A stretch of DNA of 64,000 nt from the IMG/VR virus record IMGVR_UViG_3300042147_000020, positions 1 through 64,000 of that record. One strand, given 5' to 3'. Below the pieces are notes generated by a model. That model was not told the origin of the DNA and ran no database searches. It was given only the letters and a program-made list of their open reading frames with translations. Shown one piece after another: positions 2,835-64,000 of the stretch. The position numbers were made by a program, and so were the translations under genes. Positions within the stretch are counted from its first letter, which is position 1. Each line of letters begins with the position of its first letter.

Positions 2835-3553
2835 TCCACCACCGGTGAGTCACAGGTGTAGCAGTGTTCGCCGAGGTTCATGTTACCTTTCAAATCACCA
2901 GCAGCGCAGGAGGGTTCATCGAAAGGACTGAGCTTAGGGCCCTGATAATCCGCCGGATATACTGGACGCTCTTCACCACCCAGTACATCAGACATGAACT
3001 GAGTGGACTCAGCTACTGTGGACGTACCACGAGGACCGATGTCAGACATGATGTCTCGTTGTGGAGACTGCACCACAGTGATCAGGTCTTGTCGGTAACG
3101 CGTGTCGTAGTCAGGCTCACCCGGCAACACGTTCGCCATGTCAGGGTACATTACCTGAGCAACCTGCAAACCTTTACCAGCGCGTTGTTTCAGCTCAACG
3201 CAGTACTTGGTCACGGCTTCTTCCCCGTGGAGCAAACGAGTGTTACTGCGCATCACCTTGTCGGGTTCAGTCGATTTCACGATGTCAGTCCGCACTTCGT
3301 AAGACGCTACCTTCTCACGCAACCAAGCGTTAGCCTGGTTCTTGAGGATCGCACCCATGACGCTGTTGGGGATGGGTCCACAGATAAACAATTCTGGGAG
3401 TCCCTTGTGTGACAGGCCGACGGTGTACGAGTAGTTCACCGGGTTAGCACCAAACACGGGTGGTGGATTGACCGACAGGATAGCAAAGCCATTCGAGGCG
3501 ATCGAACGTTTGATGTGACGCTTGAGTTGTTTACGGTTGTCAGCAACTTTCAT
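2828..3553 (-). CDS. DUF4262-like protein
   Basis: Motifs YSYTVGLSHKGLPELFICG and QVMYPDxxxVLPGEPDY; GGAG RBS. Confidence 0.7.
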   Translation of the reverse strand: MKVADNRKQLKRHIKRSIASNGFAILSVNPPPVFGANPVNYSYTVGLSHKGLPELFICGPIPNSVMGAILKNQANAWLREKVASYEVRTDIVKSTEPDKVMRSNTRLLHGEEAVTKYCVELKQRAGKGLQVAQVMYPDMANVLPGEPDYDTRYRQDLITVVQSPQRDIMSDIGPRGTSTVAESTQFMSDVLGGEERPVYPADYQGPKLSPFDEPSCAAGDLKGNMNLGEHCYTCDSPVVEC

Positions 3554-7737: not shown

Positions 7738-7986
7738 TCAGTAACCCCGATAAGGTCGAGGTACTTCGTGTTGCGTTGGTTCTGGACCCCAATCTTCACG
7801 AGGAGGATCGGGAATACCTTTAGCCCGGCGTGCGTTACGGATACGATCAGAACGAGCAGCATGGTAACCGCTCAGATACGATTCCTTTACGGCACGCTTG
7901 ACCGTCTTACGGATTGGCAGACCACCCATCCCGTCCTTACAACCCAGTTCGAATGCTGCCGACTTACGCTGCGTTGTTTTAGACAT
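7738..7986 (-). CDS. Small basic protein, possible Rmf-fold
   Basis: AAFELGCKDGMGG...ESYLSGYHAARSDR resembles the pattern of ribosome modulation factor; starts 1 nt after the dcd stop. Confidence 0.55.
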   Translation of the reverse strand: MSKTTQRKSAAFELGCKDGMGGLPIRKTVKRAVKESYLSGYHAARSDRIRNARRAKGIPDPPREDWGPEPTQHEVPRPYRGY

Positions 7987-7987
7987 G

Positions 7988-8782
7988 TCAGATCCTCGGC
8001 ACTACGACACCGGTTTGACCTTGATACTTGCCATCACGATCTTTGTAGGAGGTTTCGCACTCTTCGTCGGACTCGAAGAACAACATCTGTGCAACACCTT
8101 CGTTCGCGTAGATCTTGGCCGGGAGGTTGGTGGTGTTGGAGAACTCCAACGTTACATGACCCTCCCACTCAGGTTCCAGCGGGGTGACGTTCACGATGAT
8201 GCCACAGCGAGCGTAAGTGGACTTACCCAAGCAGATGGTCAACACGTTACGTGGGATACGGAAGTACTCCACGGTACGGGCCAACACGAACGAGTTCGGT
8301 GGAATAATGCAGACCGGACCTTTGAAATCAACGAAGCATTTATCGTCGAAGTTCTTGGGGTCAATGACCGAGGAGTTGATGTTGGTGAAGATCTTGAACT
8401 CGTCAGCACACCGTACGTCGTAACCATACGACGAAGTGCCGTAGGAAATGAGTTTGTCGGCATTCGGGTTCTGAAGTTGGTGCATCGTAGCTTCAGCGTC
8501 ACACATCTCATCCAACATGCTGTTGAACTTGTCAGGAGCCATGCGGCGGACTTGACCGGCTTCGAACGGCTCGATCATTGGTTTGAAGTCACGGACCAAG
8601 GGGTGCTCCGGCTTCAGTCGCCCAGCCCAGAAACGGTTTTCCAGATCTTGCAACTGATCGACGGTGTGGGTGTTACCTTCCCACGCCAGACTGGCGATGT
8701 CGCTCGAACCAGAGCGGGCAGCGATGGAGTGGGTTGGTGGCATGGATTTACGACGAATCCAGCGATCGGGCTTGATGCTCAT
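7988..8782 (-). CDS. dcd: dCTP deaminase with two N-terminal insertions
   Basis: [59 protein letters not shown] closely match proteobacterial Dcd. Confidence 0.95.
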
Positions 8783-9084
8783 TGCGTTTCCTTGGAGAGA
8801 TGGATATTGCGATACGTGTAGTCGTCTACGACCAAGAAGTGATCTGGTATAATTTCAATCACCCAGTCACCGGGGTTAACCAACAACTTACCTTGGCGGG
8901 TAGCAATTACCCCCATGACAGACCACTGATACATGTGGGCGTCTTTGGAACAACCTGAGGTACCAATCAGCTTGTGTACCTCCATATAACAGGTACCTGT
9001 GACCAGAGGGTGATCCAGACACTCGTAACCGTTGGTAGCCTCAGCATTCCAACGTACTGCATTGTGGATCTTTATATGGGTCAT
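8779..9084 (-). CDS. Small phage protein of the 'TLEG...PGDWI' family (divergent)
   Basis: AVRWN...[19 protein letters not shown]; start moved to ATG 9084 (AGGGAG RBS); ATGA overlap with dcd. Confidence 0.6.
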
Positions 9085-9097
9085 TGGTTTACTCCCT

Positions 9098-9478
9098 CTA
9101 TTTAGGAACCGGTACAGCGTCACCCCACAAGGTGGCCCACTTCTCGTTCTCAGTCACAACAACGTAGAACAGTGGGAGGAAACGGGTGGCGTCATAGTTG
9201 AGACTGTTGGCCAACCAAGCCTTCGCACTATCCGGGGAATAGTAAGCCATCCCCAGATTCAGAGTCTCTGGGTCCCAACCGTGTTTCACGTAGATCTCTT
9301 TAGCACGGTCTTTCATCTGGAAAGCAGACTCGCTATCCGACAGAAACTTACCACGGACTTTGGAGTTGTCGTGGATCAGTACCAGTAGTTCTTCCAGAGT
9401 TCCTTTATAGATACTCAGGGTTTTAACCTTCTCAGGTACCGGCTTTTCTTTATCAAACATGGGAAGCATCGTATTCAC
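9098..9478 (-). CDS. Hypothetical protein
   Basis: 126-aa ORF in the operon. Confidence 0.7.
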   Translation of the reverse strand: MNTMLPMFDKEKPVPEKVKTLSIYKGTLEELLVLIHDNSKVRGKFLSDSESAFQMKDRAKEIYVKHGWDPETLNLGMAYYSPDSAKAWLANSLNYDATRFLPLFYVVVTENEKWATLWGDAVPVPK

Positions 9479-51775: not shown

Positions 51776-52855
51776 TTACTTCACGGTCGGGAAGACCTGA
51801 CGATAGCGCTTGATGAAGTGTTCGATCAGACCACCTTTGATCTCGGCGCGCTTCTTCGAACCCACGCCATCACAGATGATCATGTACTCGTCGATGGCCG
51901 CTGTCAGGATGTCGAGGTACTTGGACATCGAATCAATCGGTGCTGGGTCCAGATGCTTCTTGTAACCGGCTTCGAGCAGGCTCAGTGAGGCATCGTCTAC
52001 TTGACCGACTGGTTTGTTCACCAGAGTTTCCAGAACCTTCAGGAAGAACACCGCCTGATCTACTTCAGGCTTGTCTTCTTTAGGACTGACCTTCGGTAAG
52101 TGGTACGGCATCGGGAGAATCGTGTTGATTTCCCAACCGTGTGGTCTGAACTGGCGAGTGAAACGCAGCAACTCACTGTAGTCTTCCACTTTACCCACGG
52201 AACCGAGGCTAACTGCTACGCCCTTCTTGCGAGTCACCCAGTGAATGCAGTTATCGCTACCCGACCAGATCAACACATTACCGAACTCCAACTGAGTAGG
52301 TGTGTCACGCCCACGGTCGCGGTGTTCAGGACCACGCCAGTTCAGACCCAGCAACATGCGTGGGTGATGAATGCCGGAGTTGACGTCGATGAAGCTAGTG
52401 ATGCCATCAAAGGCATCTCGCAGTTTGTCGTAACCGTAGTAGCACGGATAGACCGGACGGGTTGGAATAAACTCGAGCATGCGGACGTTACCGCCACGTG
52501 CAGCACCCATCAAGTAGGAGAACAGGACCGCAGGGTCTTCGCTACCGTAATCGTGGTCGGTGCTCGAACCAGACTCCCGTACGGTACGCATGCGCAAGTA
52601 GTTGCGAGCGATGTCGGATTCCTTCACCGTACGCAACAACTGAGGGTCACGGCTTTCAGGGTCCATCATCGTGTCATCGCCGATTTCCAGCGGGTAGTCG
52701 AAGTTCTTGCAGAAAGCCAGTTGCACAGGCTCATCGTCAAACGTGAACAGCGCCAACCCTGTGACTTCGAATACCGCACGATGCCCTGCGGGATCAAAGA
52801 TCACACGGTTCTTTTCGGTGAACAGTTTGTCTACAGCGGATTGAAGAATCGACAT
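51776..52855 (-). CDS. Hypothetical protein
   Basis: 359-aa ORF with phage-like codon bias. Confidence 0.75.
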   Translation of the reverse strand: MSILQSAVDKLFTEKNRVIFDPAGHRAVFEVTGLALFTFDDEPVQLAFCKNFDYPLEIGDDTMMDPESRDPQLLRTVKESDIARNYLRMRTVRESGSSTDHDYGSEDPAVLFSYLMGAARGGNVRMLEFIPTRPVYPCYYGYDKLRDAFDGITSFIDVNSGIHHPRMLLGLNWRGPEHRDRGRDTPTQLEFGNVLIWSGSDNCIHWVTRKKGVAVSLGSVGKVEDYSELLRFTRQFRPHGWEINTILPMPYHLPKVSPKEDKPEVDQAVFFLKVLETLVNKPVGQVDDASLSLLEAGYKKHLDPAPIDSMSKYLDILTAAIDEYMIICDGVGSKKRAEIKGGLIEHFIKRYRQVFPTVK

Positions 52856-52902
52856 TTCTTACGCCTTCTAAGGGTTACTAGATAATTGAGGTGTGTCAGG
52901 TT

Positions 52903-53581: not shown

Positions 53582-54028
53582 TTAATAGAGGATGATGCTC
53601 ACAGGTAATTCGGTTTCAGTCAAGTACTTCTCCACCAATGGCTTGAAGTTCTTGAAGTAATCGAGTTGACCCTGACCACACCCCAGTGCCGGGATACCCA
53701 GTTCAGTAATTCCCAACTCTTTGTAGCGTGCCACTAAGTCCTCGAAGCCTGCAATCAGGTACTCTTCTTTACTAGGATTGACGAAGTGTTCTTTCGTCGG
53801 AAACAGTAGGACTTGTTGACAGGAATCTGGAATGGGGTAAACCACAAGCTTACCCACATCCAACTGACCAGTTTTCAGAGCAACCTGATAGAACGCAAGA
53901 AGGCCAGGAGTCCTGAACTTGAAAGCTGCGGCCAACCCGTTCCCGAGTGTGCCCCAGGTATTGACTGGACAGGCTACCGTTTGCAGCCCGCAACTAAAGA
54001 GGGAACCTTCACCTTCAAATGCTATCAT
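53582..54028 (-). CDS. Macrodomain protein (DarG/TARG1-like ADP-ribose glycohydrolase)
   Basis: PVNTxGxLGxGLAxAFK, FPTK (Lys equivalent to the DarG catalytic residue), IPALGCGxGxL. Confidence 0.85.
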   Translation of the reverse strand: MIAFEGEGSLFSCGLQTVACPVNTWGTLGNGLAAAFKFRTPGLLAFYQVALKTGQLDVGKLVVYPIPDSCQQVLLFPTKEHFVNPSKEEYLIAGFEDLVARYKELGITELGIPALGCGQGQLDYFKNFKPLVEKYLTETELPVSIILY

Positions 54029-54450
54029 CTCTTGTTACCCTGTTTGTTTTGTTCAAGCTGTTTGATCTGCCGTTCCGTAGGGATCAGCGACCGTGCAGCG
54101 TCTTCTGAGCAAATGCGCAAGACCAGACGATGGATCTCACGAGGGAGGTCTAGGAACTCCGTCAATGTGAAACCCCAATTCTTGTGCACCTCATTAACAT
54201 TGAACTGGTAAATAGCGCGATACAGAGAACCGTATTCGTGGTAGTCCTCTTTCACGTGCTTACCCACCAAAGCCAACGGACGTCCTTGCTCAGCAGAGTG
54301 GTCAAAGATCCCGTAGTCTTCGTCGTACGCCTCACGCAAAACCAGTTGGGCTGTCATGGCATCCAAGTTGCTGGCGCTTTCAAGCAGCCCTTCTAGCCGT
54401 CCTTTCTGACCTATCCGAGACAAACCGAAGCCGGGGAGTGCTGTGTGCAT
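54025..54450 (-). CDS. Putative frameshift-extension (GT-like) part of a tail assembly chaperone
   Basis: HKNWGFTLTEFLDLP motif; its frame is open back to the T9 run of the upstream gene; no well-spaced RBS. Confidence 0.6.
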   Translation of the reverse strand: MHTALPGFGLSRIGQKGRLEGLLESASNLDAMTAQLVLREAYDEDYGIFDHSAEQGRPLALVGKHVKEDYHEYGSLYRAIYQFNVNEVHKNWGFTLTEFLDLPREIHRLVLRICSEDAARSLIPTERQIKQLEQNKQGNKR

Positions 54451-54473
54451 GTCCCCGTTTCGTGGGTCGATCT

Positions 54474-56012
54474 CTAGAGGTAAGTTCTTGTAAGGACTTT
54501 GTTGGTGCGTTGGTAGAGAAGGGAAAAAAAAACTCTCGCAACGTCCAGAGGGATGAGGTGAGGGTGTCGTTTCTCTGACTCAGGAGCCTGCGGCCACTGA
54601 CAGGCTGGGCAGTTGTGCTTCGGCAGCGCGATCAGGGAAACAGTCGCGTTGTCGATGAACTTGCCGATTTCTTCGATGAAGCGGTTACGAATCTCTTCGT
54701 CACCGGAGAACAGAGCCGCCAGACTTTCGATGGTGTCTCGATCGTCAGAGATCTCGGTGTCCGGTACCAGCACTTCACCCACCCAGTGGCCATACTGACG
54801 CATGGTGGTCAGACGACCTTGGTTGGTGATGTACTCGTCGCGTTCCTGACCTTTCAACGGAACCTGGAATGCGTTCTCCATCATCTGGACGATCGAGTCG
54901 ATCCAGCTAAAGCCGGAGTTCTCGTAGTCCTGCAACACTGGGGTACGCAGGTTCATCGAAACGGTAGGAGTCAGCTCGACCAGCTTCACGCCACCACGGG
55001 TGTGTTCCTGCTCGTAACGCTTGATGTCTTCCGGCGTCATCCGTTGTTTGCGCTGAGTCATGCGCTTACGTTGCCACTCGGTCAGCGAACGGTTGTCGGT
55101 GAACACCAGCTTACCGAGGTCCAGCAGCTCTTTGATCAGATGCTGGCACGAACCTTCGGTGTTGGCGCAGGCTTGTACGTACGGGTAGCCACCCGGATAG
55201 ATCGCCAAAGCCAGGCCCCACAAGATCGACGGAATGTCCGTAACCTTGATGATCGACTTGAGGTAGTCGACGTTCAGTTCTTGGGCGTTGGTGTCGAACA
55301 CGTACTGGAACGCGAAGTTCAACAGGTAGCTGGTCTGGTAGACCGACGTGTTGGAGAAGATCATGCCGTTGGTCAAACGACCCAGCGTGGTCTTGTCGTT
55401 GGCGATACGACGTTCCAGTTCGAGGATAGCCGACTCAGGTGGAGTTTTAAAGCTCAACCAGATACCGGTGTGCCACAGTGGAACTTGTACCAGAGAACCC
55501 AAGCCAGTAGCCGCAGCCACACGCAGGACAGCACGTTCACCAGTCAGGACAGCACCGCCGTCACCGAACTTAGGACGGGACGCACCGATCTTCTCGCCTT
55601 CGTAGTCCACGAACTGTTGCCAGTCCGAGTCAGCACGTTCCAACGACGCCATCAGCGGGTTACCGCGCAGCAGAGTCGCTTGAGCCAGTTTCAGCTCTTG
55701 GGCCCAGACACGCATCTTGGTATCGCCGGAAGCATTGATGTTCGGGTAAGCGTCGATCAACTCGTTCAAGTCGAAAGCGTCACCACCGAGCAACGACAAG
55801 TGTTCGTTGTCCGCTTCGAAGTCGTACTTGGCAACGTCTTTCTCCGGCACTGGTTTAGAGTGCGGGAACGTTTGCGTGACGTTCGCATTGGTGCGCTTGG
55901 TTTCGAAGCCAGTGGGAGGAGCTGGCTCTTCAGGCTTTTGCGCAGGCTTCGGTTCAGGAACAGGAAAACACTGCTCTGCTGTACCTTCTTTGTTATGGTC
56001 TTCAGTGGACAT
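54474..56012 (-). CDS. Putative tail/baseplate assembly chaperone (Zn-binding)
   Basis: 512 aa; CxxxxxxC and CPAC; slippery GTT TTT TTT TCC 16 codons before the stop. Confidence 0.6.
   Translation of the reverse strand: MSTEDHNKEGTAEQCFPVPEPKPAQKPEEPAPPTGFETKRTNANVTQTFPHSKPVPEKDVAKYDFEADNEHLSLLGGDAFDLNELIDAYPNINASGDTKMRVWAQELKLAQATLLRGNPLMASLERADSDWQQFVDYEGEKIGASRPKFGDGGAVLTGERAVLRVAAATGLGSLVQVPLWHTGIWLSFKTPPESAILELERRIANDKTTLGRLTNGMIFSNTSVYQTSYLLNFAFQYVFDTNAQELNVDYLKSIIKVTDIPSILWGLALAIYPGGYPYVQACANTEGSCQHLIKELLDLGKLVFTDNRSLTEWQRKRMTQRKQRMTPEDIKRYEQEHTRGGVKLVELTPTVSMNLRTPVLQDYENSGFSWIDSIVQMMENAFQVPLKGQERDEYITNQGRLTTMRQYGHWVGEVLVPDTEISDDRDTIESLAALFSGDEEIRNRFIEEIGKFIDNATVSLIALPKHNCPACQWPQAPESEKRHPHLIPLDVARVFFSLLYQRTNKVLTRTYL
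54521..54533 (-). other. Putative -1 programmed ribosomal frameshift site (U UUU UUU)
   Basis: Nine T on the coding strand, correctly phased; the -1 frame reads 25 sense codons into ATG 54450. Confidence 0.6.
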
Positions 56013-56021
56013 CTACAACTC

Positions 56022-56504
56022 CTAGATGCTGGCGGCTGGGGCATCAGGCAGTGGCTGGATCTGACCCAGTGCTGGCTGTGCGACTTGTGAGAAAAACGCG
56101 GTGACTTGGAACGCCGACGGAATCACGACCAATTGATATGACGTGATCCAATTGCTGTACTCTTCACCGATGGCCATCAGATTGGCCAGTACGTCCGGAT
56201 CGAGCGTCGGGTCGCCTTTGCGATCTTTCGCGATCTGTTCGTGCTTGACGTGAATGGCAGCAAGCTTGTCGCTGTACTCTTTGACGTCTTTGGCCAGCAC
56301 GCGTGCGCTGTCGAGCAGACCTTGTTTGTCGACCACTGCACGATCAACCAGTTCTTGGTTCTTGATCAACAGCAGAGCGTGAGACGGGCTGGTGCGCAGT
56401 GCATTGCACTCGAGCAACAGAGTGTCCATACTGTCCCACATCTCCATGGAGCGTTGGGATTGAACCATCTGTGCAACGTTATTGAAGGTGCGACGCTTTG
56501 ACAT
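56022..56504 (-). CDS. Hypothetical protein
   Basis: 160 aa, AAGGA RBS. Confidence 0.75.
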   Translation of the reverse strand: MSKRRTFNNVAQMVQSQRSMEMWDSMDTLLLECNALRTSPSHALLLIKNQELVDRAVVDKQGLLDSARVLAKDVKEYSDKLAAIHVKHEQIAKDRKGDPTLDPDVLANLMAIGEEYSNWITSYQLVVIPSAFQVTAFFSQVAQPALGQIQPLPDAPAASI

Positions 56505-56611: not shown

Positions 56612-57466
56612 ATGACTATTGATGACCTGGAGAATTACCTCCAACAGCGGGTCTCCCCCGAAGCAACAGAGTTAATGGTTGATACCGCTCGAGTGTTGTG
56701 CGAGTCGGGTTTAACCAGTCACCTCGATGACTTGGAAGACATGGTTGCCTCCGAAGACCAAATCGGTCGGGACATCACCGTCTTGCAGATGCGTCAGTAC
56801 CTCACCTCCACTTTGGAAGCGTGTGTGAATCAGTTCGGCATTGAATTGCTGGAAGATGGTGAGATCAACTTGCGACACCTGACCGGGTTGCAACGTGGCA
56901 TCAACATGATCACCAACTACGAAGACGTAGAAGCCATTGAAGCACTGTGTCTGGCTGAGACTGATCCAGAAGAGCGCCTCATTGATATTCTGGAGATACT
57001 GACCGAATATACATGGGCTGATTACAGTTTGCTGATTGACACCGTGAGTACTTCACTGTTCGATCGTATTCTGGAACAGTTGGTTAAGCCTGACCAGTTG
57101 GAAAAATCCAACAACATCGGTAACGCGGTTCTGATCCGTGTCAAGTCTTTGATCAACCACGTAGAAAGCCCGTGGCTGCTCGATGAGATCCAAGACGGGT
57201 GTGAGTTAGGGTTGCCGGTAGAAGCGATGGTAGAGCGCTTCAAGACCCGTTACGATCGAGTTCTGACGGTCTCCAATGAACTGCACCGCAAGCCTACACT
57301 GTTGGCTGAGCAATTCCTTCTATATATACTCGCTTCGAGTTGCCCTGACGACAAACTGTTGGCTACAGCCCAAGATCAATTGGAAGCTGTGGTGATGCAC
57401 GTTCCTACATTGTCGGCTGCCTCTCGTCACATCCAAGAACTGTTGAGTCAGGTGACGTCCTCATGA
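56612..57466 (+). CDS. Acidic hypothetical protein
   Basis: 284 aa; ATGA overlap with the RNAP subunit gene. Confidence 0.75.
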   Translation: MTIDDLENYLQQRVSPEATELMVDTARVLCESGLTSHLDDLEDMVASEDQIGRDITVLQMRQYLTSTLEACVNQFGIELLEDGEINLRHLTGLQRGINMITNYEDVEAIEALCLAETDPEERLIDILEILTEYTWADYSLLIDTVSTSLFDRILEQLVKPDQLEKSNNIGNAVLIRVKSLINHVESPWLLDEIQDGCELGLPVEAMVERFKTRYDRVLTVSNELHRKPTLLAEQFLLYILASSCPDDKLLATAQDQLEAVVMHVPTLSAASRHIQELLSQVTSS

Positions 57467-58776
57467 AAACTGCTGACTACTACTTGATGGCACTGAACGG
57501 CGGCGCTTATAAAAAGAAGCGTTGGGTTCTGTCCATCTTCAGCGTACTGATCGACTCCAAGCCTCAAGGTTGGCCGTTTGAGATCGTGCGTACGGATAAG
57601 AACGTGTTCTTCCGTGACCCTACGGACTTGAACATCTTGATCTCCCTCGATGACGCTGACGTGAACAAGCCGGTCTTGAGTTTCAAAGACAAGATCGCTG
57701 TGACGCCTGAACAGGTTCTGAACCTCGACAAACCGATCACCACGACCGCAGGCAACCTGCTCTTCAACTACTACGCATTGATCTATGCGTTGGGTAAGAA
57801 GATTCCATACATGGAAGGGCGTATCTCGGCGACTCAAGTAGAGAAGATCATTGAACCCCGGTTGACGTCTAACCCGGTGGAGAATGGGGCGAACTATGAC
57901 CCTAATGATCTGAACCCGATCTACGTGAGTGAGTACAAGAAATTCAACAAGGCTATGTTTGGCCTGATGGGTTTCACTCAGCTCTGTGTGCCGTCCGCTA
58001 CGCCACGTACGATGTCAACCGACCCACGTATCCCAGCGATCCGTGAAAAGCTCTTAGAGAAGTACGCAGGCCGTCTGAATGACCCTGCTATTATCTCCCT
58101 GATCGACCAAGAACTCATTAAGGTTGATAAAGAGTGGATGGCCAACGATCCGGATGGTGGTGCTGGTTTCTATGTGAACGAAACCAAGTCTTACGACGTT
58201 GTGCGTAAGAAAGTGTTCCTGATGCACGGTGCTGAATCGGGCTTCATGGAAGGCACTGAGGTCGACTTCATCAAGAACTCCTTGAACGAAGGTTGGGACA
58301 TCGAGAAACTCCCTAGCATGGTTAACTCCTTGCGGGAAGGTTCGTACAACCGTGGTCGAGACACTGCACTCGGTGGTGAAGCTGTGAAGTTCTTGGGTCG
58401 AGTGTTCCAGAACACTGTGATCGCTGAGAAGGACTGTGGGTCTACTCTCGGGTGGATGAAGGACTTTACTGAGGCCAACTATCAGAAGTTCGTTGGTTTC
58501 TACCGCATCACCCCTCAGGGCCCTGTAGTGATGGATGAGGCTTACACCAAGTCTCAGATCGGTAAACAAGTTCACGTTCGTTCACCAATGTTGTGTAGGA
58601 CTCCGAAAACGGCATTCTGTGAATGCTGTATGGGTGCCAAGAACGCATTGAATCCAACCTCGTTGGGTCTGATGGCGGCTGACGTAGGATCGCAGATCAT
58701 GGGCATTTTCATGGGTGCGATGCACGGTAAGTCTCTGAAGACTGAACGGTACGATTTCAAGAAGTCTATCTTCTAA
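57463..58776 (+). CDS. Virion RNA polymerase beta-prime subunit fragment (phiKZ gp80-like)
   Basis: Bridge-helix-like SLREGSYNRGRDTALGG; DCGS; RSPMLC...FCECCMG Zn site; trigger-loop-like MGAMHG. Confidence 0.85.
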   Translation: MKTADYYLMALNGGAYKKKRWVLSIFSVLIDSKPQGWPFEIVRTDKNVFFRDPTDLNILISLDDADVNKPVLSFKDKIAVTPEQVLNLDKPITTTAGNLLFNYYALIYALGKKIPYMEGRISATQVEKIIEPRLTSNPVENGANYDPNDLNPIYVSEYKKFNKAMFGLMGFTQLCVPSATPRTMSTDPRIPAIREKLLEKYAGRLNDPAIISLIDQELIKVDKEWMANDPDGGAGFYVNETKSYDVVRKKVFLMHGAESGFMEGTEVDFIKNSLNEGWDIEKLPSMVNSLREGSYNRGRDTALGGEAVKFLGRVFQNTVIAEKDCGSTLGWMKDFTEANYQKFVGFYRITPQGPVVMDEAYTKSQIGKQVHVRSPMLCRTPKTAFCECCMGAKNALNPTSLGLMAADVGSQIMGIFMGAMHGKSLKTERYDFKKSIF

Positions 58777-62040: not shown

Positions 62041-64000
62041 TTACTGTTTGGTAAGATCCCCCATCATCAGGGCATCTAGCGGATGGTCAGGACGCTTCTT
62101 CAAGATGAAGGTCTTAATGTCCTGCAACGTGGCTCCTTGACGCTCGTACGCCATACTGGCCGACAAGCTACGGAAGTCCATGTTGTCCTCGTAGTAACCC
62201 ACTTCCCCGTTCACTCGATCCAGCGGCAGCCGGTGATCGCGACCTTCCACACTCTCAACCATGGTCGAAAGGATGATGCCTTCCAAGTGAGCAATGTTCA
62301 CGCTCAGCTTAGAGCTGATCAGATCGTAGAAAGCAAACAACGCTTCCTCAGTGTTCGAGTAGGTGTTCGACGATTTAACCTTCGAACGTTTGCCACGTAC
62401 TTTCCCAGACTTTGTAGGGGCCGCTTTGATGAAACGCTCAATGTCACCCATGTACTCCACCATGTTGGTGTGCTTCATTGGCAACTTGAACATCGTATCA
62501 GAGTAATCCCACTGCGACAGATCAATGATGTAGTCGCCGCGAGAGTTGAGTTCCCAACCTACACGTTTAATGTAGATCAGGGCATCTTCGGTCAAGAAGC
62601 TCAACCGGCTACCCATGGACACCGACAGGTTGACTTTATCCAAGTTCCCGTCATCAGCGACAATCTCCAGCGTGATGTCAATGATCTCGGAGAGTTTCTC
62701 CAGAGGCAGGTTACGAATCGTGCGAACCCGATTGATGTCAGGCAAGCGCGGTGCGTATTCTGCTGAGATCACCATCTTCACGGAGGAACGCTCAGCCAAG
62801 TCAGCGCTGAGTTTGATTTCTGCCCCAGTATTCCCCTGTCTGAGATACACAGCATCGTGCTCACAGATATAGAAGTCATCTACTACCGAACTACCGTCCA
62901 AGTGTTTGGTCGACAGAACGTTCTGGGATACCAGCTCACATAGAGTGGTGGCACATACGTGACCCAATACAGTGTGTGGCGGAATCGAGAAGGAGATCTC
63001 ACCCAAGCAAACCGAGCAGACGCCGTAGCGATCTGGGTGACGACACTTCAGTACGGAACGCACTTCAATCTCTTCGCCAATCAGTTCACGTGACGACTTC
63101 AGGATTGGCTTCAAGCCTTCTGCCGTCTTGTAGTACTTACCTTCCAACGCTTGGAAGTTACCAGCCGTGACTTTCCACAGGATGGTGTCTTGAGTACCAC
63201 AGTCTTCGTAGTGCACATGCTGCAACGTCGCACAACCCAACTGCATCTTCCGGTTGAAGTACTCGGAGTCAGCCACTGGATCTTTAGCAGCCCAGAGAGC
63301 CTTGGAGGCCGAACGGGATTCTACCAGTGCGTCGTACAGGCTCACCAAGCCCTGGGTGTAGTTACGCATGACCGGATCGTGGAAGATCCGTGAGTCAATG
63401 TCAGTCAGGAAGCCCCGCAAGGAAACTACCTGCAACACCTGACCCAAGCTAACCAGTTTGGACTTTACCGCCTTACCGATAGGATTCCCTTGGAGTTCAT
63501 TGGGATCTTTCAGCACAGCAGACACACCACGATAGGTATCGTCGATGGAGTTCTGCGTAGGCTTAGCCGCAGCGTTCAACGCAGCGATCTTCGGGTGGCG
63601 GATTACGTCAACGAAGTCCGTGATGCAGATACTGGCCACTTCCTCTTCCAGTCCAGTCACGGTGTCGTTGTAGATGTCTTGCTCCACGTCGTAGATCCAA
63701 CCGGACCACTCAGTGTTGTCAAACGCCGTACGCGTGGTGTTGCAATAATCCATCGCTAGGCTACGACCAAACGCCAGCAGGTTGTTGAAGGTATCCTTCG
63801 TCAGGCGCTCATCACCCATGTGCGATTTCTTCAGACACGGAATCTGAGGATACGCACGGTTGAAGATGGCGCAGTACCAAGTAAAGATAGTGGCTTCACG
63901 CTCCACCACCATTTCACCATCGTCGAACACCATGATGAACTTCGCCTCTGGGGATTCCAAGTCCCAGATTTGTTTCTTCGTCAACTGGTAAATGTCACGG
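62041..64000 (-). CDS. Non-virion RNA polymerase beta-prime C-terminal subunit (phiKZ gp74-like); start lies beyond the window edge
   Basis: ESRSASKAL...SEYFNRKMQL, DCGT, RSVLKC...CSVCLG, VLSTKH; the frame stays open to base 64000 (...RDIYQLTKKQIW). Confidence 0.88.
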   Translation of the reverse strand, partial: RDIYQLTKKQIWDLESPEAKFIMVFDDGEMVVEREATIFTWYCAIFNRAYPQIPCLKKSHMGDERLTKDTFNNLLAFGRSLAMDYCNTTRTAFDNTEWSGWIYDVEQDIYNDTVTGLEEEVASICITDFVDVIRHPKIAALNAAAKPTQNSIDDTYRGVSAVLKDPNELQGNPIGKAVKSKLVSLGQVLQVVSLRGFLTDIDSRIFHDPVMRNYTQGLVSLYDALVESRSASKALWAAKDPVADSEYFNRKMQLGCATLQHVHYEDCGTQDTILWKVTAGNFQALEGKYYKTAEGLKPILKSSRELIGEEIEVRSVLKCRHPDRYGVCSVCLGEISFSIPPHTVLGHVCATTLCELVSQNVLSTKHLDGSSVVDDFYICEHDAVYLRQGNTGAEIKLSADLAERSSVKMVISAEYAPRLPDINRVRTIRNLPLEKLSEIIDITLEIVADDGNLDKVNLSVSMGSRLSFLTEDALIYIKRVGWELNSRGDYIIDLSQWDYSDTMFKLPMKHTNMVEYMGDIERFIKAAPTKSGKVRGKRSKVKSSNTYSNTEEALFAFYDLISSKLSVNIAHLEGIILSTMVESVEGRDHRLPLDRVNGEVGYYEDNMDFRSLSASMAYERQGATLQDIKTFILKKRPDHPLDALMMGDLTKQ

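Follow-up and report, generated by a model that had tools for sequence, protein, structure and literature searches.

There are several precedents in which one gene yields a short and a long protein. Phage lambda (G/GT) and P2 (E/E+E') make their tail assembly chaperones by a programmed -1 frameshift on a slippery heptamer, a few codons before the stop of the upstream gene, which gives a minor C-terminally extended product beside the major short one; as here, the downstream ORF lacks a proper start of its own, and the lambda signal lacks an obvious stimulatory RNA structure. Gene 10A/10B of T7 makes a -1 shift on a U-rich site decoded by Phe-tRNA (G_GUU_UUC) near the end of the capsid gene, giving a longer minor form at a fixed ratio. 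In mxiE of Shigella and dnaX of Thermus, which are cellular genes, it is RNA polymerase that shifts, on a T9 or A9 run, one added base fusing two overlapping frames. T4, on the other hand, uses two separate genes, and an internal start (gp26'), to make its baseplate-hub assembly chaperones: the short gp26, which ends right after FFELL, and its longer paralog gp51, which runs 48 residues past the end of its PF12322 match at residue 201, about where VFKLL lies. Both belong to Pfam PF12322 and are listed as hub assembly chaperones, gp51 being absent from particles (PMC3004832).

We examined a locus in a window of 64,000 nucleotides (positions 1 to 64,000 of IMG/VR record IMGVR_UViG_3300042147_000020) where an earlier note, made from the sequence alone, had proposed that a hidden -1 frameshift joins two genes of a phiKZ-like phage into a G/GT-style tail-chaperone pair. 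The features are the following, all on the minus strand.

56022..56504 (-), upstream gene of the probable operon, a 160-aa ortholog of phiKZ gp78, of unknown function.
54474..56012 (-), ORF A, the 0-frame product of 512 aa.
54524..54532 (-), slip site, a T9 run phased GTT TTT TTT TCC, the heptamer T_TTT_TTT occupying 54531-54525; after the shift the next codon is TTC at 54525-54523.
54474..54523 (-), dual-coding overlap, the 0 frame encoding the last 16 residues of A (SLLYQRTNKVLTRTYL, then the stop) and the -1 frame the first part of the linker.
54451..54525 (-), linker in the -1 frame, FPSLPTHQQSPYKNLPLEIDPRNGD, Pro-rich, predicted disordered, and upstream of the ATG that gene callers use for ORF B.
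54025..54450 (-), ORF B as an ATG-to-stop ORF of 141 aa, helical, with conserved HV..P.FG, AY...YGI and FG.S..EFL.LPR motifs.
53582..54028 (-), downstream macro-domain gene of 148 aa (PF01661, E 2.4e-8), whose ATG overlaps the TGA of B (ATGA); it is context and not part of the recoding unit.

The observation of the note is correct in this sequence. The run (V F F S) is exactly T9 and the heptamer is a correctly phased X_XXY_YYZ, although it starts 18 codons before the TAG of A and not 16, a small miscount. After a -1 slip the reading is F-PSLPTHQQSPYKNLPLEIDPRNGD-MHTALPGFG..., with no stop and in frame with ATG 54450; the predicted fusion is 496 + 166 = 662 aa and its junction peptide is VFFFPSLPTHQQSPYK, as the note wrote. 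GGGG ends 2 nt before the ATG, too close for a normal Shine-Dalgarno spacing, and WGFTLTEFLDLP, which the note had singled out, is present and is the best-conserved motif of B.

ORF A is the ortholog of phiKZ gp77, PhiPA3 gp074, Goslar gp081 and SPN3US gp39, and corresponds to core gene cg18 of the Chimalliviridae, the nucleus-forming jumbo phages, where it is listed as hypothetical. It matches phrog_4585 over the full profile length (E 2.4e-113), and tblastn found orthologs in 230 phage records. A nucleotide search of the phage collection with the locus found no match: the window is a new lineage, whose best isolate relative shares 38% protein identity. The gene order gp78, then gp77, then B is conserved in LucasX, PhiPA3, phiKZ, RTH11, FLC9, Xoo-sp14, SA002, Simmy50, Goslar, Aeromonas D6 and Kc263, and Goslar also has the downstream macro-domain gene (Goslar_00083). 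ORF B matches phrog_12109 (E 9e-24).

The note had named a lack of slippery site, or stops in the -1 linker, among orthologs as evidence that would go against the frameshift. We compared 89 related loci, from phiKZ, PhiPA3, Goslar, SPN3US and PCH45 to metagenomic phages, forming 40 clusters at 50% identity. All 89 have a T5-T9 run at the same invariant Phe-Phe, 9-46 codons before the stop of A, followed by an open -1 frame of 151-186 codons that encodes a homologous domain. The overlap contains 0 stops in 1,706 codons of the -1 frame, where about 124 would be expected from the density in the body of A (2,867 in 39,396, or 7.3%), while the +1 frame of the same stretch has 75; the pattern is thus far beyond chance. 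A canonical T_TTT_TTN heptamer is found in 77 of 89 loci; the other 12 have only T_TTT_N, which allows slippage of the P-site tRNA alone. Nucleotide identity in the overlap is about 10 points higher than in the body of A in six pairwise comparisons.

Codon usage indicates that selection at synonymous sites keeps the run. Phe codons at the site are TTT 143 to TTC 19, against 384 to 749 elsewhere in A, including genomes with 0 TTT and 19 TTC elsewhere. The preceding residue is variable, but its codon ends in T in 79 of 89 loci, using 7 different codons, and Kc263, which has lost FF (it reads NFLD), keeps T_TTT_TTA. By contrast usable starts for B are rare: 53 of 89 loci have no ATG, GTG or TTG ahead of its conserved N-terminal FG motif, 9 have none before the next conserved motif, and only 4 have any start codon with an SD-like element ahead of the N-terminal motif, so that the argument of the note on the poor ribosome-binding site also holds. 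phiKZ has no start for 87 codons, and three of the compared loci (L050, L061 and L068) have none for 138-154. In an alignment of 69 products of the -1 frame, amino-acid conservation (DP.GH...P.FG) extends upstream of the starts annotated in relatives. No in-frame A-B fusion appeared among 123 homologs or among the top 150 of 1,738 representative clusters at 50% identity, which fits a need for both forms.

A stimulatory element, common but not obligatory for programmed -1 frameshifting, was not found. The 70 nt after the run are no more stable than other windows of the same gene (mean z +0.68 over 75 loci), the region is even unusually unstructured in the clade of the window (z about +3), and no conserved downstream stem-loop or pseudoknot and no conserved SD-like sequence upstream is visible, so that the efficiency may be low.

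These data strongly support the central inference of the note, a -1 shift at the T-run joining the two ORFs, which turns out to be far more general than could be known from one sequence; its interpretation as a whole is however only partly supported, since the label of G/GT-style chaperone pair is right only as a mechanistic analogy. ORF A is 512 aa with an alpha/beta fold, not a protein of about 140 aa, and its slip site is U_UUU_UUU on Phe codons rather than G_GGA_AAG. A has no Pfam match, and neither A nor B matches a Phage_TAC or Phage_tail_T model, whereas lambda G itself matches PF06894 at E 9e-62 in the same test. By hhalign B is not significantly similar to lambda G or T (PF06223), and the motif compared by the note with those of known extensions aligns to lambda T GMSSTEYADWHR at a probability of 0.4%. 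The gene is not between the tail tube and tape measure genes but, as the note said, sits among RNA polymerase genes, its neighbours being virion RNA polymerase subunits, a helicase, the macro-domain protein and a DNA polymerase. In an ESM Atlas feature search 70 of the 100 clusters nearest to B carry PF21822 (Phage_TAC_15), with a score of 0.90 and 171 shared features, but this comes without alignment or E-value and was not confirmed by HMM or fold search, which leaves a TAC-like character of B undecided. As for T7 10A/10B, it concerns a capsid protein with a short extension, unrelated in sequence and role.

A role in tail or baseplate assembly gets independent but modest support from another direction, the comparison with tail and baseplate chaperones by structure prediction and profile alignment that the note had put forward as a check. 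The AlphaFold model of A is confident (pLDDT 88, pTM 0.87), and its best structural match outside its own family in BFVD, by Foldseek, is with proteins named “Baseplate hub assembly protein, bacteriophage T4-like” (E 1.2e-5 to 5e-5, probability 1.0, TM 0.46-0.58 by target); together with others named “Baseplate protein”, several proteins of 248-285 aa are found at E 1e-5 to 1e-3, probability 1.0 and TM 0.44-0.58 by target, both sides being predicted models. ESM Atlas neighbours of A carry PF12322. A has two Cys pairs, C282/C289 and C468/C471, conserved at 90% or more, and a C-terminal motif P..P.D....FF.LL with F495 invariant and F496 nearly so; in the gp26 family C82, C84, C187 and C190 are invariant and F204 and F205 nearly so. 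hhalign lines up ...P.x.CPxC..H.H.IP.D....FFxLL of A with the C-terminal ...PIKCPECGKTHAHVIRGLKEFFELL* of gp26, thus sharing CPxC...FFxLL.

Nevertheless the link to gp26/gp51 fails at the level of sequence. The hhalign probability is 6-29% over only 40-54 columns, the window protein has no hit to PF12322, and no member reaches its cut-off: two of 26 family members hit it at E 0.18, and two hit phrog_150 “baseplate hub” at E 0.0026, while T4 gp26 and gp51 score 215 and 177 bits. A is also 2.5 times larger. The A profile found nothing in PDB sequences, Foldseek found nothing in PDB structures for A or for B, NCBIfam gave nothing meaningful for A, and B (model pLDDT 76.5, below 50 for residues 1-20 of the -1 product) has no significant match to anything of known function. 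We also asked if T4 gene 26 undergoes the same shift: it does not, as its FF is TTC TTT and the -1 frame is closed. Nor does the C-terminal tail of gp51 show detectable similarity to B. A need for A in hub assembly and its absence from the finished particle were not assayed, and the support is indirect: the main text of the cryo-EM study of the Goslar virion, which assigns all hub and inner-baseplate density, never mentions gp81 or gp82, and SPN3US gp39 and gp40 are not mentioned in the main text of the virion proteome paper.

The explanation that we favor, with a probability of about 0.72, is that one mRNA yields two proteins. Most ribosomes would read A in frame and stop at 54474, giving the 512-aa protein, while a fraction would slip back one base on the U-run, the Phe-tRNAs on UUU UUU re-pairing with U_UUU_UU or, in relatives with shorter runs, the P-site Phe-tRNA slipping alone on U_UUU. 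These ribosomes would replace the last 16 residues of A by a Pro-rich flexible linker and a helical domain of ~140 aa, the ratio of short to long form being set by the slip frequency as in lambda, P2 and T7; in this view B is not an independent gene in most relatives. What our analysis establishes is the site, its phase, the open frame, the conservation at nucleotide level and the absence of usable starts; that ribosomes rather than RNA polymerase make the shift, and with which efficiency, is inferred. No frameshift product has been observed, which the note had counted as a point to be checked; there are no proteomic, ribosome-profiling or reporter data, and only assembled contigs of DNA runs were examined. 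The function is inferred more weakly: A would be the jumbo-phage counterpart of the gp26/gp51 chaperones, acting in tail and baseplate morphogenesis without staying in the virion, and the B extension would serve as a tethered docking or dimerisation module for a partner.

A further reading, which is doubtful but not excluded, is that nucleus-forming jumbo phages make the equivalents of both gp26 and gp51 from a single core gene by recoding, the short and long pair echoing that of T4. The frameshift-only B domain would then be a tethered chaperone or docking module bringing the tape measure, tube-initiator or spike proteins to the nascent hub, and the ratio of the two forms would be set, and possibly tuned during infection, by slippage of the host ribosome or of the phage RNA polymerase on the U-run.

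Among the alternatives, the one that survives best, though it appears unlikely, is that the same two products arise by transcriptional slippage, the phage RNA polymerase stuttering on the template A-run and adding one U, so that U9 becomes U10, which gives exactly the -1 frame, as in mxiE or dnaX. The window and its three closest relatives carry T9 and 25 other loci carry T8, lengths prone to slippage by bacterial RNA polymerases, so that part or all of the shift in the window could be transcriptional. Moreover no stimulatory RNA structure is conserved, and the Chimalliviridae transcribe with their own unusual multisubunit polymerases, whose slippage behaviour is unknown. No RNA reads of the locus were examined, the RNA runs holding only distant relatives. 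However, five loci have only T5 and thirteen have T6, which is short for efficient polymerase slippage; T5-T7 runs in most relatives and the strict phase point to the ribosome. The run is extended almost always on the 5' side, as the heptamer model requires, so that a T precedes an in-frame TTT in 79 of 89 loci, whereas transcriptional slippage would not care about phase.

That A and B are two ordinary genes, B starting at its own ATG perhaps by translational coupling to the stop of A, is very improbable. Certainly the window has this ATG 21 nt after the stop, its three closest relatives keep one nearby, all public records annotate two genes, and FF is a protein motif that gp26 also has without any slip site, so that the T-run and open frame might be by-products of it. 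At the opposite stand the scarcity of starts, the GGGG too close to the ATG, the conservation upstream of annotated starts, the absence of stops, the use of TTT against the own codon preference of the genomes, and the position of B in the -1 frame in 89 of 89 loci although the spacing varies from 9 to 46 codons. Finally a sequencing or assembly artefact, with T10 or T8 plus a compensating change in the real genome and a single fused gene or a pseudogene, a possibility raised by the note itself, can be dismissed despite the error-prone nature of homopolymers, since T9 without indel at 54524-54532 is the assembled consensus in contigs of four runs from four studies, T9 is also present in three further IMG/VR contigs at 96, 93 and 74% protein identity, and the two-frame arrangement is seen in all 89 loci, including many finished isolate genomes sequenced by different methods.

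We found no annotation of this event and no report of it in the literature on phiKZ gp77 or on frameshifting in the Chimalliviridae, the mentions of gp77 found referring to the numbering of other phages. It adds a deeply conserved case of recoding in a protein family not previously linked to it, useful for frameshift predictors and phage annotation pipelines, and directly testable in tractable systems (phiKZ, PhiPA3, Goslar, PCH45, SPN3US). It also changes the gene map of a much-studied phage family: the small “hypothetical gene” after phiKZ gp77 orthologs is mostly not a gene but the second half of a trans-frame protein, of which, in phiKZ, the 219-nt “intergenic” gap and PHIKZ076.4 are parts. 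For cg18 it gives a first functional handle, as a probable relative of the T4 hub-assembly chaperones, whose own mode of action is still unclear.

The relatives of 686 aa, such as that of phiEaH2, are not A-B fusions but are longer at the N-terminus, phrog_8054 matching A at profile positions 275-675 of 693. The RTH11 record at first looked like an exception, as B lies in the +1 frame, which is explained by a run of T7 where its sister phage LucasX has T8; this difference produces a spurious CDS of 627 aa, showing that the run is error-prone at least in sequencing and that homopolymer miscalls at this position already generate wrong CDSs.

The reading frames A and B and the features around them lie as follows.

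56012..54474, minus strand: ORF A, 512 aa
54532-54524, minus strand: a run of exactly nine T's, with the heptamer T_TTT_TTT at 54531-54525
54450..54025, minus strand: ORF B, 141 aa
53582-54028, minus strand: a macro-domain gene (PF01661, E 2.4e-8), whose ATG overlaps the TGA of B
57463-58776 and 62041-63984: RNA polymerase subunit genes
54615-56090, plus strand: an ORF of 491 aa, antisense to A over nearly its whole length

The sequence at the run reads ...GCG AGA GTT TTT TTT TCC CTT..., which is V-F-F-S in the frame of A, so that T_TTT_TTT is a correctly phased X_XXY_YYZ heptamer; it starts 18 codons before the TAG. After a -1 slip the next codon is TTC, and the reading continues PSLPTHQQSPYKNLPLEIDPRNGD and then MHTALPGFG... 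without a stop, for a product of 496 + 166 = 662 aa. What the earlier note had seen at this site holds: the junction peptide and the fusion length that it gave are both correct. The ATG of B is preceded by GGGG at a spacing of only 2 nt.

A belongs to phrog_4585 and B to phrog_12109, both of unknown function. By tblastn, A is found in 230 phage records, all below 60% identity, including phiKZ (PHIKZ077), PhiPA3 (gp074), 201phi2-1, Goslar, RAY, PCH45 and SPN3US. The supplementary tables of the Chimalliviridae core-genome paper list Goslar gp081 / PhiKZ gp077 / RAY gp267 as core gene cg18, "hypothetical protein" (PMC10299810). The gene order is conserved: the virion RNA polymerase beta subunit (phiKZ gp80) and gp79 lie on one strand, diverging from gp78, then gp77, then B on the other. 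In the window the neighbours are the RNA polymerase subunit genes, a helicase, a DNA polymerase and the macro-domain gene, and no tail gene is adjacent. Goslar has the same arrangement of B and the macro domain (Goslar_00083); no role is known in this operon for a domain that binds or hydrolyses ADP-ribose.

The loss of the slippery run, or stops in the -1 frame, among orthologous loci had been set in advance as what would count against recoding. We compared 89 loci: 77 usable of the 78 IMG/VR loci found with a profile of A, plus 12 isolate genomes. These loci are not phylogenetically independent, though they span 40 clusters at 50% identity and 11 at 40%. Every locus has a run of T5-T9 (42 with T7, 25 with T8, 13 with T6, 5 with T5 and 4 with T9), located at the same Phe-Phe of the C-terminal motif P..P.D....FF.LL, 9-46 codons before the stop of A. 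In every locus the -1 frame is open from the run for 151-186 codons (median 170) and encodes a homologous domain, while the +1 frame, in the first 82 loci, is typically open for only about a dozen codons. Summed over loci, the -1 frame has 2,867 stops in 39,396 codons within the body of A (7.3%) and none in the 1,706 codons between the run and the stop of A, where the +1 frame has 75.

The choice of codons points in the same direction. Elsewhere in A, Phe is encoded 384 times by TTT and 749 times by TTC; at the site it is TTT 143 and TTC 19, TTC appearing only as the last codon of the heptamer, and this holds in genomes that otherwise use TTC exclusively. The residue before FF varies (T, V, L, I, A, N, G), yet its codon ends in T in 79 of 89 loci. 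In the most distant relatives the protein motif is no longer FF.LL: Kosakonia phage Kc263 (locus L096 of our set, 3511-3516) reads N-F-L-D but its DNA is still AAT TTT TTA, that is T_TTT_TTA, and Aeromonas phage D6 (L095) reads TFFD with T_TTT_TTC; in both the open -1 frame of 162-173 codons persists. Selection is therefore on the nucleotides. Besides, the overlap is about 10 percentage points more conserved in nucleotides than the body of A in six pairwise comparisons, as expected for dual coding. The longest overlap is that of Serratia phage PCH45 (L094, 2239-2380), with 46 codons between the T7 run and the stop of A, and an annotated B gene that starts 55 codons into the -1 ORF; a genome-wide transposon essentiality data set exists for this phage.

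Whether the ribosome or the polymerase makes the shift is a distinct question. For the ribosome, 77 of 89 sites are canonical, correctly phased T_TTT_TTN heptamers, and the other 12 still have an in-frame TTT preceded by T, so that a P-site Phe-tRNA can re-pair in the -1 frame. The run is extended on the 5' side, as the heptamer rule demands, and five loci have only T5. We put ribosomal slippage at a probability of about 0.7; no measurement of the product, of its efficiency or at the RNA level is available, and no RNA reads could be examined. Transcriptional slippage is the less likely alternative, although both may contribute at T9. For the polymerase, T8-T9 runs, including that of the window, are long enough for stuttering, and these phages use their own polymerases. 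Moreover, no downstream RNA structure is conserved, the mean z being +0.68 against other windows of the same genes. In the clade of the window (54457-54523, and the equivalent stretch in loci L012-L018) the 70 nt after the slip site are G-poor, pyrimidine-rich and predicted to be much less structured than the rest of the gene (z +2 to +3.9, about +3), the opposite of the usual frameshift stimulator.

B is not a free-standing gene in most of these phages. Its first conserved motif (H-V-x-x-P-x-F-G) lies upstream of many annotated starts; in 53 of 89 loci there is no ATG, GTG or TTG between the run and that motif, in 74 of 89 there is no ATG, and only 4 loci have a start there with an SD-like tetramer. 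In phiKZ (L003, 4173-4676; AF399011.1, about 71442-71945) the 219-nt "intergenic" gap after PHIKZ077 is coding in the -1 frame, and the annotated PHIKZ076.4 (80 aa) is only the last part of the 167-codon -1 ORF that begins at the T7 run, with no ATG, GTG or TTG in its first 87 codons. In three other loci, L050, L061 and L068, the first possible start is at codon 138-154 of an ORF of 157-163 codons. No homolog of A examined carries B in the same frame: a set of 123 homologs are 351-578 aa long, and in the 150 best of 1,738 representative clusters the match to the profile ends within about 20 residues of the end of the protein. Both a short and a long form therefore seem to be required, which is the hallmark of programmed recoding.

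An assembly error at the homopolymer, the other objection raised beforehand, is dismissed: the window, taken from the 238.8-kb jumbo-phage contig UViG_3300042147_000020, shares its T9 and its two-frame layout with three other IMG/VR contigs (96, 93 and 74% identity in A), and Logan contigs of four rhizosphere or soil runs from four studies cover the run with no indel, although contigs show the consensus only, so that a minority variant cannot be excluded. One public record does seem affected: Xanthomonas phage RTH11 (L008, 3382-3388; OQ790161.1) has T7 where its sister phage LucasX has T8, so that its annotated 627-aa CDS runs on in the wrong frame after the run, with both the true C-terminus of A and B out of frame. 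This is probably a homopolymer miscall, or possibly real length variation at the run.

Structure prediction, which had also been suggested as a test of a chaperone role, gives for A a confident AlphaFold model (96-sequence alignment, pLDDT 88.4, pTM 0.87). It has no match in the PDB, by sequence profile or by fold. Against BFVD, it first finds orthologs (E 1e-36 to 1e-17), then several proteins of 226-312 aa named "Baseplate hub assembly protein, bacteriophage T4-like" or "Baseplate protein" (E 1.2e-5 to 9e-4, probability 1.0, TM 0.44-0.58 by target). Its ESM Atlas neighbours carry PF12322 T4_baseplate; two of 26 family members hit PF12322 at E 0.18 and two hit phrog_150 "baseplate hub" at E 0.0026. 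T4 gp26 and gp51 are both PF12322. Aligned by hhalign with gp26, or with a 22-sequence gp26 alignment, the profile of A matches only over the C-terminal 40-54 columns and at low probability (29% and 6%). The order of motifs is nevertheless the same, ...S-L-I-A-x-P-x-x-x-C-P-x-C...H-P-H-L-I-P-L-D...F-F-x-L-L in A and ...Y-L-A-V-P-I-K-C-P-E-C-G-K-T-H-A-H-V-I-R-G-L-K-E-F-F-E-L-L in gp26, which ends there, and both families keep two Cys pairs.

In T4, gp26 and gp51 are listed as hub assembly chaperones, and gp51 is not in the particle (PMC3004832); NCBI names the family "gp26 family baseplate hub assembly chaperone". The Goslar virion cryo-EM paper, which assigns all density of the hub and inner baseplate, never mentions gp81 or gp82, and SPN3US gp39 and gp40 are not mentioned in the main text of the virion proteome paper. 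We conclude that A is probably a distant, enlarged relative of the T4 hub-assembly chaperones. The run and its conservation are observed on the sequences themselves, whereas this assignment of function is an inference from predicted folds and weak sequence signals, and A does not belong to the family by Pfam's criterion.

The -1 product is modelled as a disordered linker of 20 residues followed by a helical domain (pLDDT 76.5), with no fold match in the PDB and no Pfam match. Its ESM Atlas neighbours are dominated by Phage_TAC_15 clusters (score 0.90), a lead that comes without alignment statistics and that we could not confirm. Alignment by hhalign with lambda G and T is not significant, the motif of B pointed out in the earlier note pairing with lambda T "GMSSTEYADWHR" at a probability of 0.4%. 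A profile search of PDB sequences gives one borderline hit (E 0.0058) to FAP385 (PDB chain 7jtk_u), apparently a small RIIa-like docking or dimerisation protein of cilia. The hit lies over the conserved FG.S..EFL.LPR helix pair (window 54040-54200, residues about 92-142 of the -1 product profile) and hints at a docking or dimerisation module.

The earlier note proposed a tail-chaperone pair of the G/GT style, and this is supported only in part. The way it works is that of lambda G/GT, P2 E/E+E' and T7 10A/10B: a -1 shift just before the stop of a morphogenesis gene, giving a fixed proportion of a longer form. However, it is not a member of the G/GT family, since size, fold, Pfam families and genomic position all argue against it. 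T4 offers an intriguing parallel with two paralogous genes (26 and 51; L092, the T4 sequence, 7803-9229): gp26 ends right after FFELL, whereas gp51 runs 48 residues past the end of its PF12322 match (residue 201), about where its VFKLL motif lies. T4 has no slip site; gene 25 starts in the -1 frame overlapping the stop of gene 26, but the -1 frame is closed between FF and that start. Whether the short and long pair of the jumbo phages is functionally equivalent is speculation, and the gp51 tail shows no similarity to B.

Programmed -1 recoding in a phage morphogenesis gene is already known; what differs here is the protein family and the genomic setting, and its conservation across a whole viral family. 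Full-text searches on phiKZ, Chimalliviridae and jumbo phages, for gp77, frameshifting and tail or baseplate-hub assembly, found no description of the event, but as subscription journals were incompletely covered a prior mention cannot be ruled out. None of the annotated records that we opened marks a joined or slipped CDS: they show two genes, a gap (phiKZ), a mis-extended CDS (RTH11) or an overlap. The latter is the case of Erwinia phage Simmy50 (L090, 3646-3781) and other Agricanvirus records, where the -1 ORF was called from a start inside A, giving two CDSs that overlap by 136 nt; several records list two hypothetical proteins under the match for the same reason. As for the 491-aa ORF antisense to A, similar long antisense ORFs occur opposite other genes here, for example at 52100-52885, and it is most likely a by-product of codon bias and not a gene.
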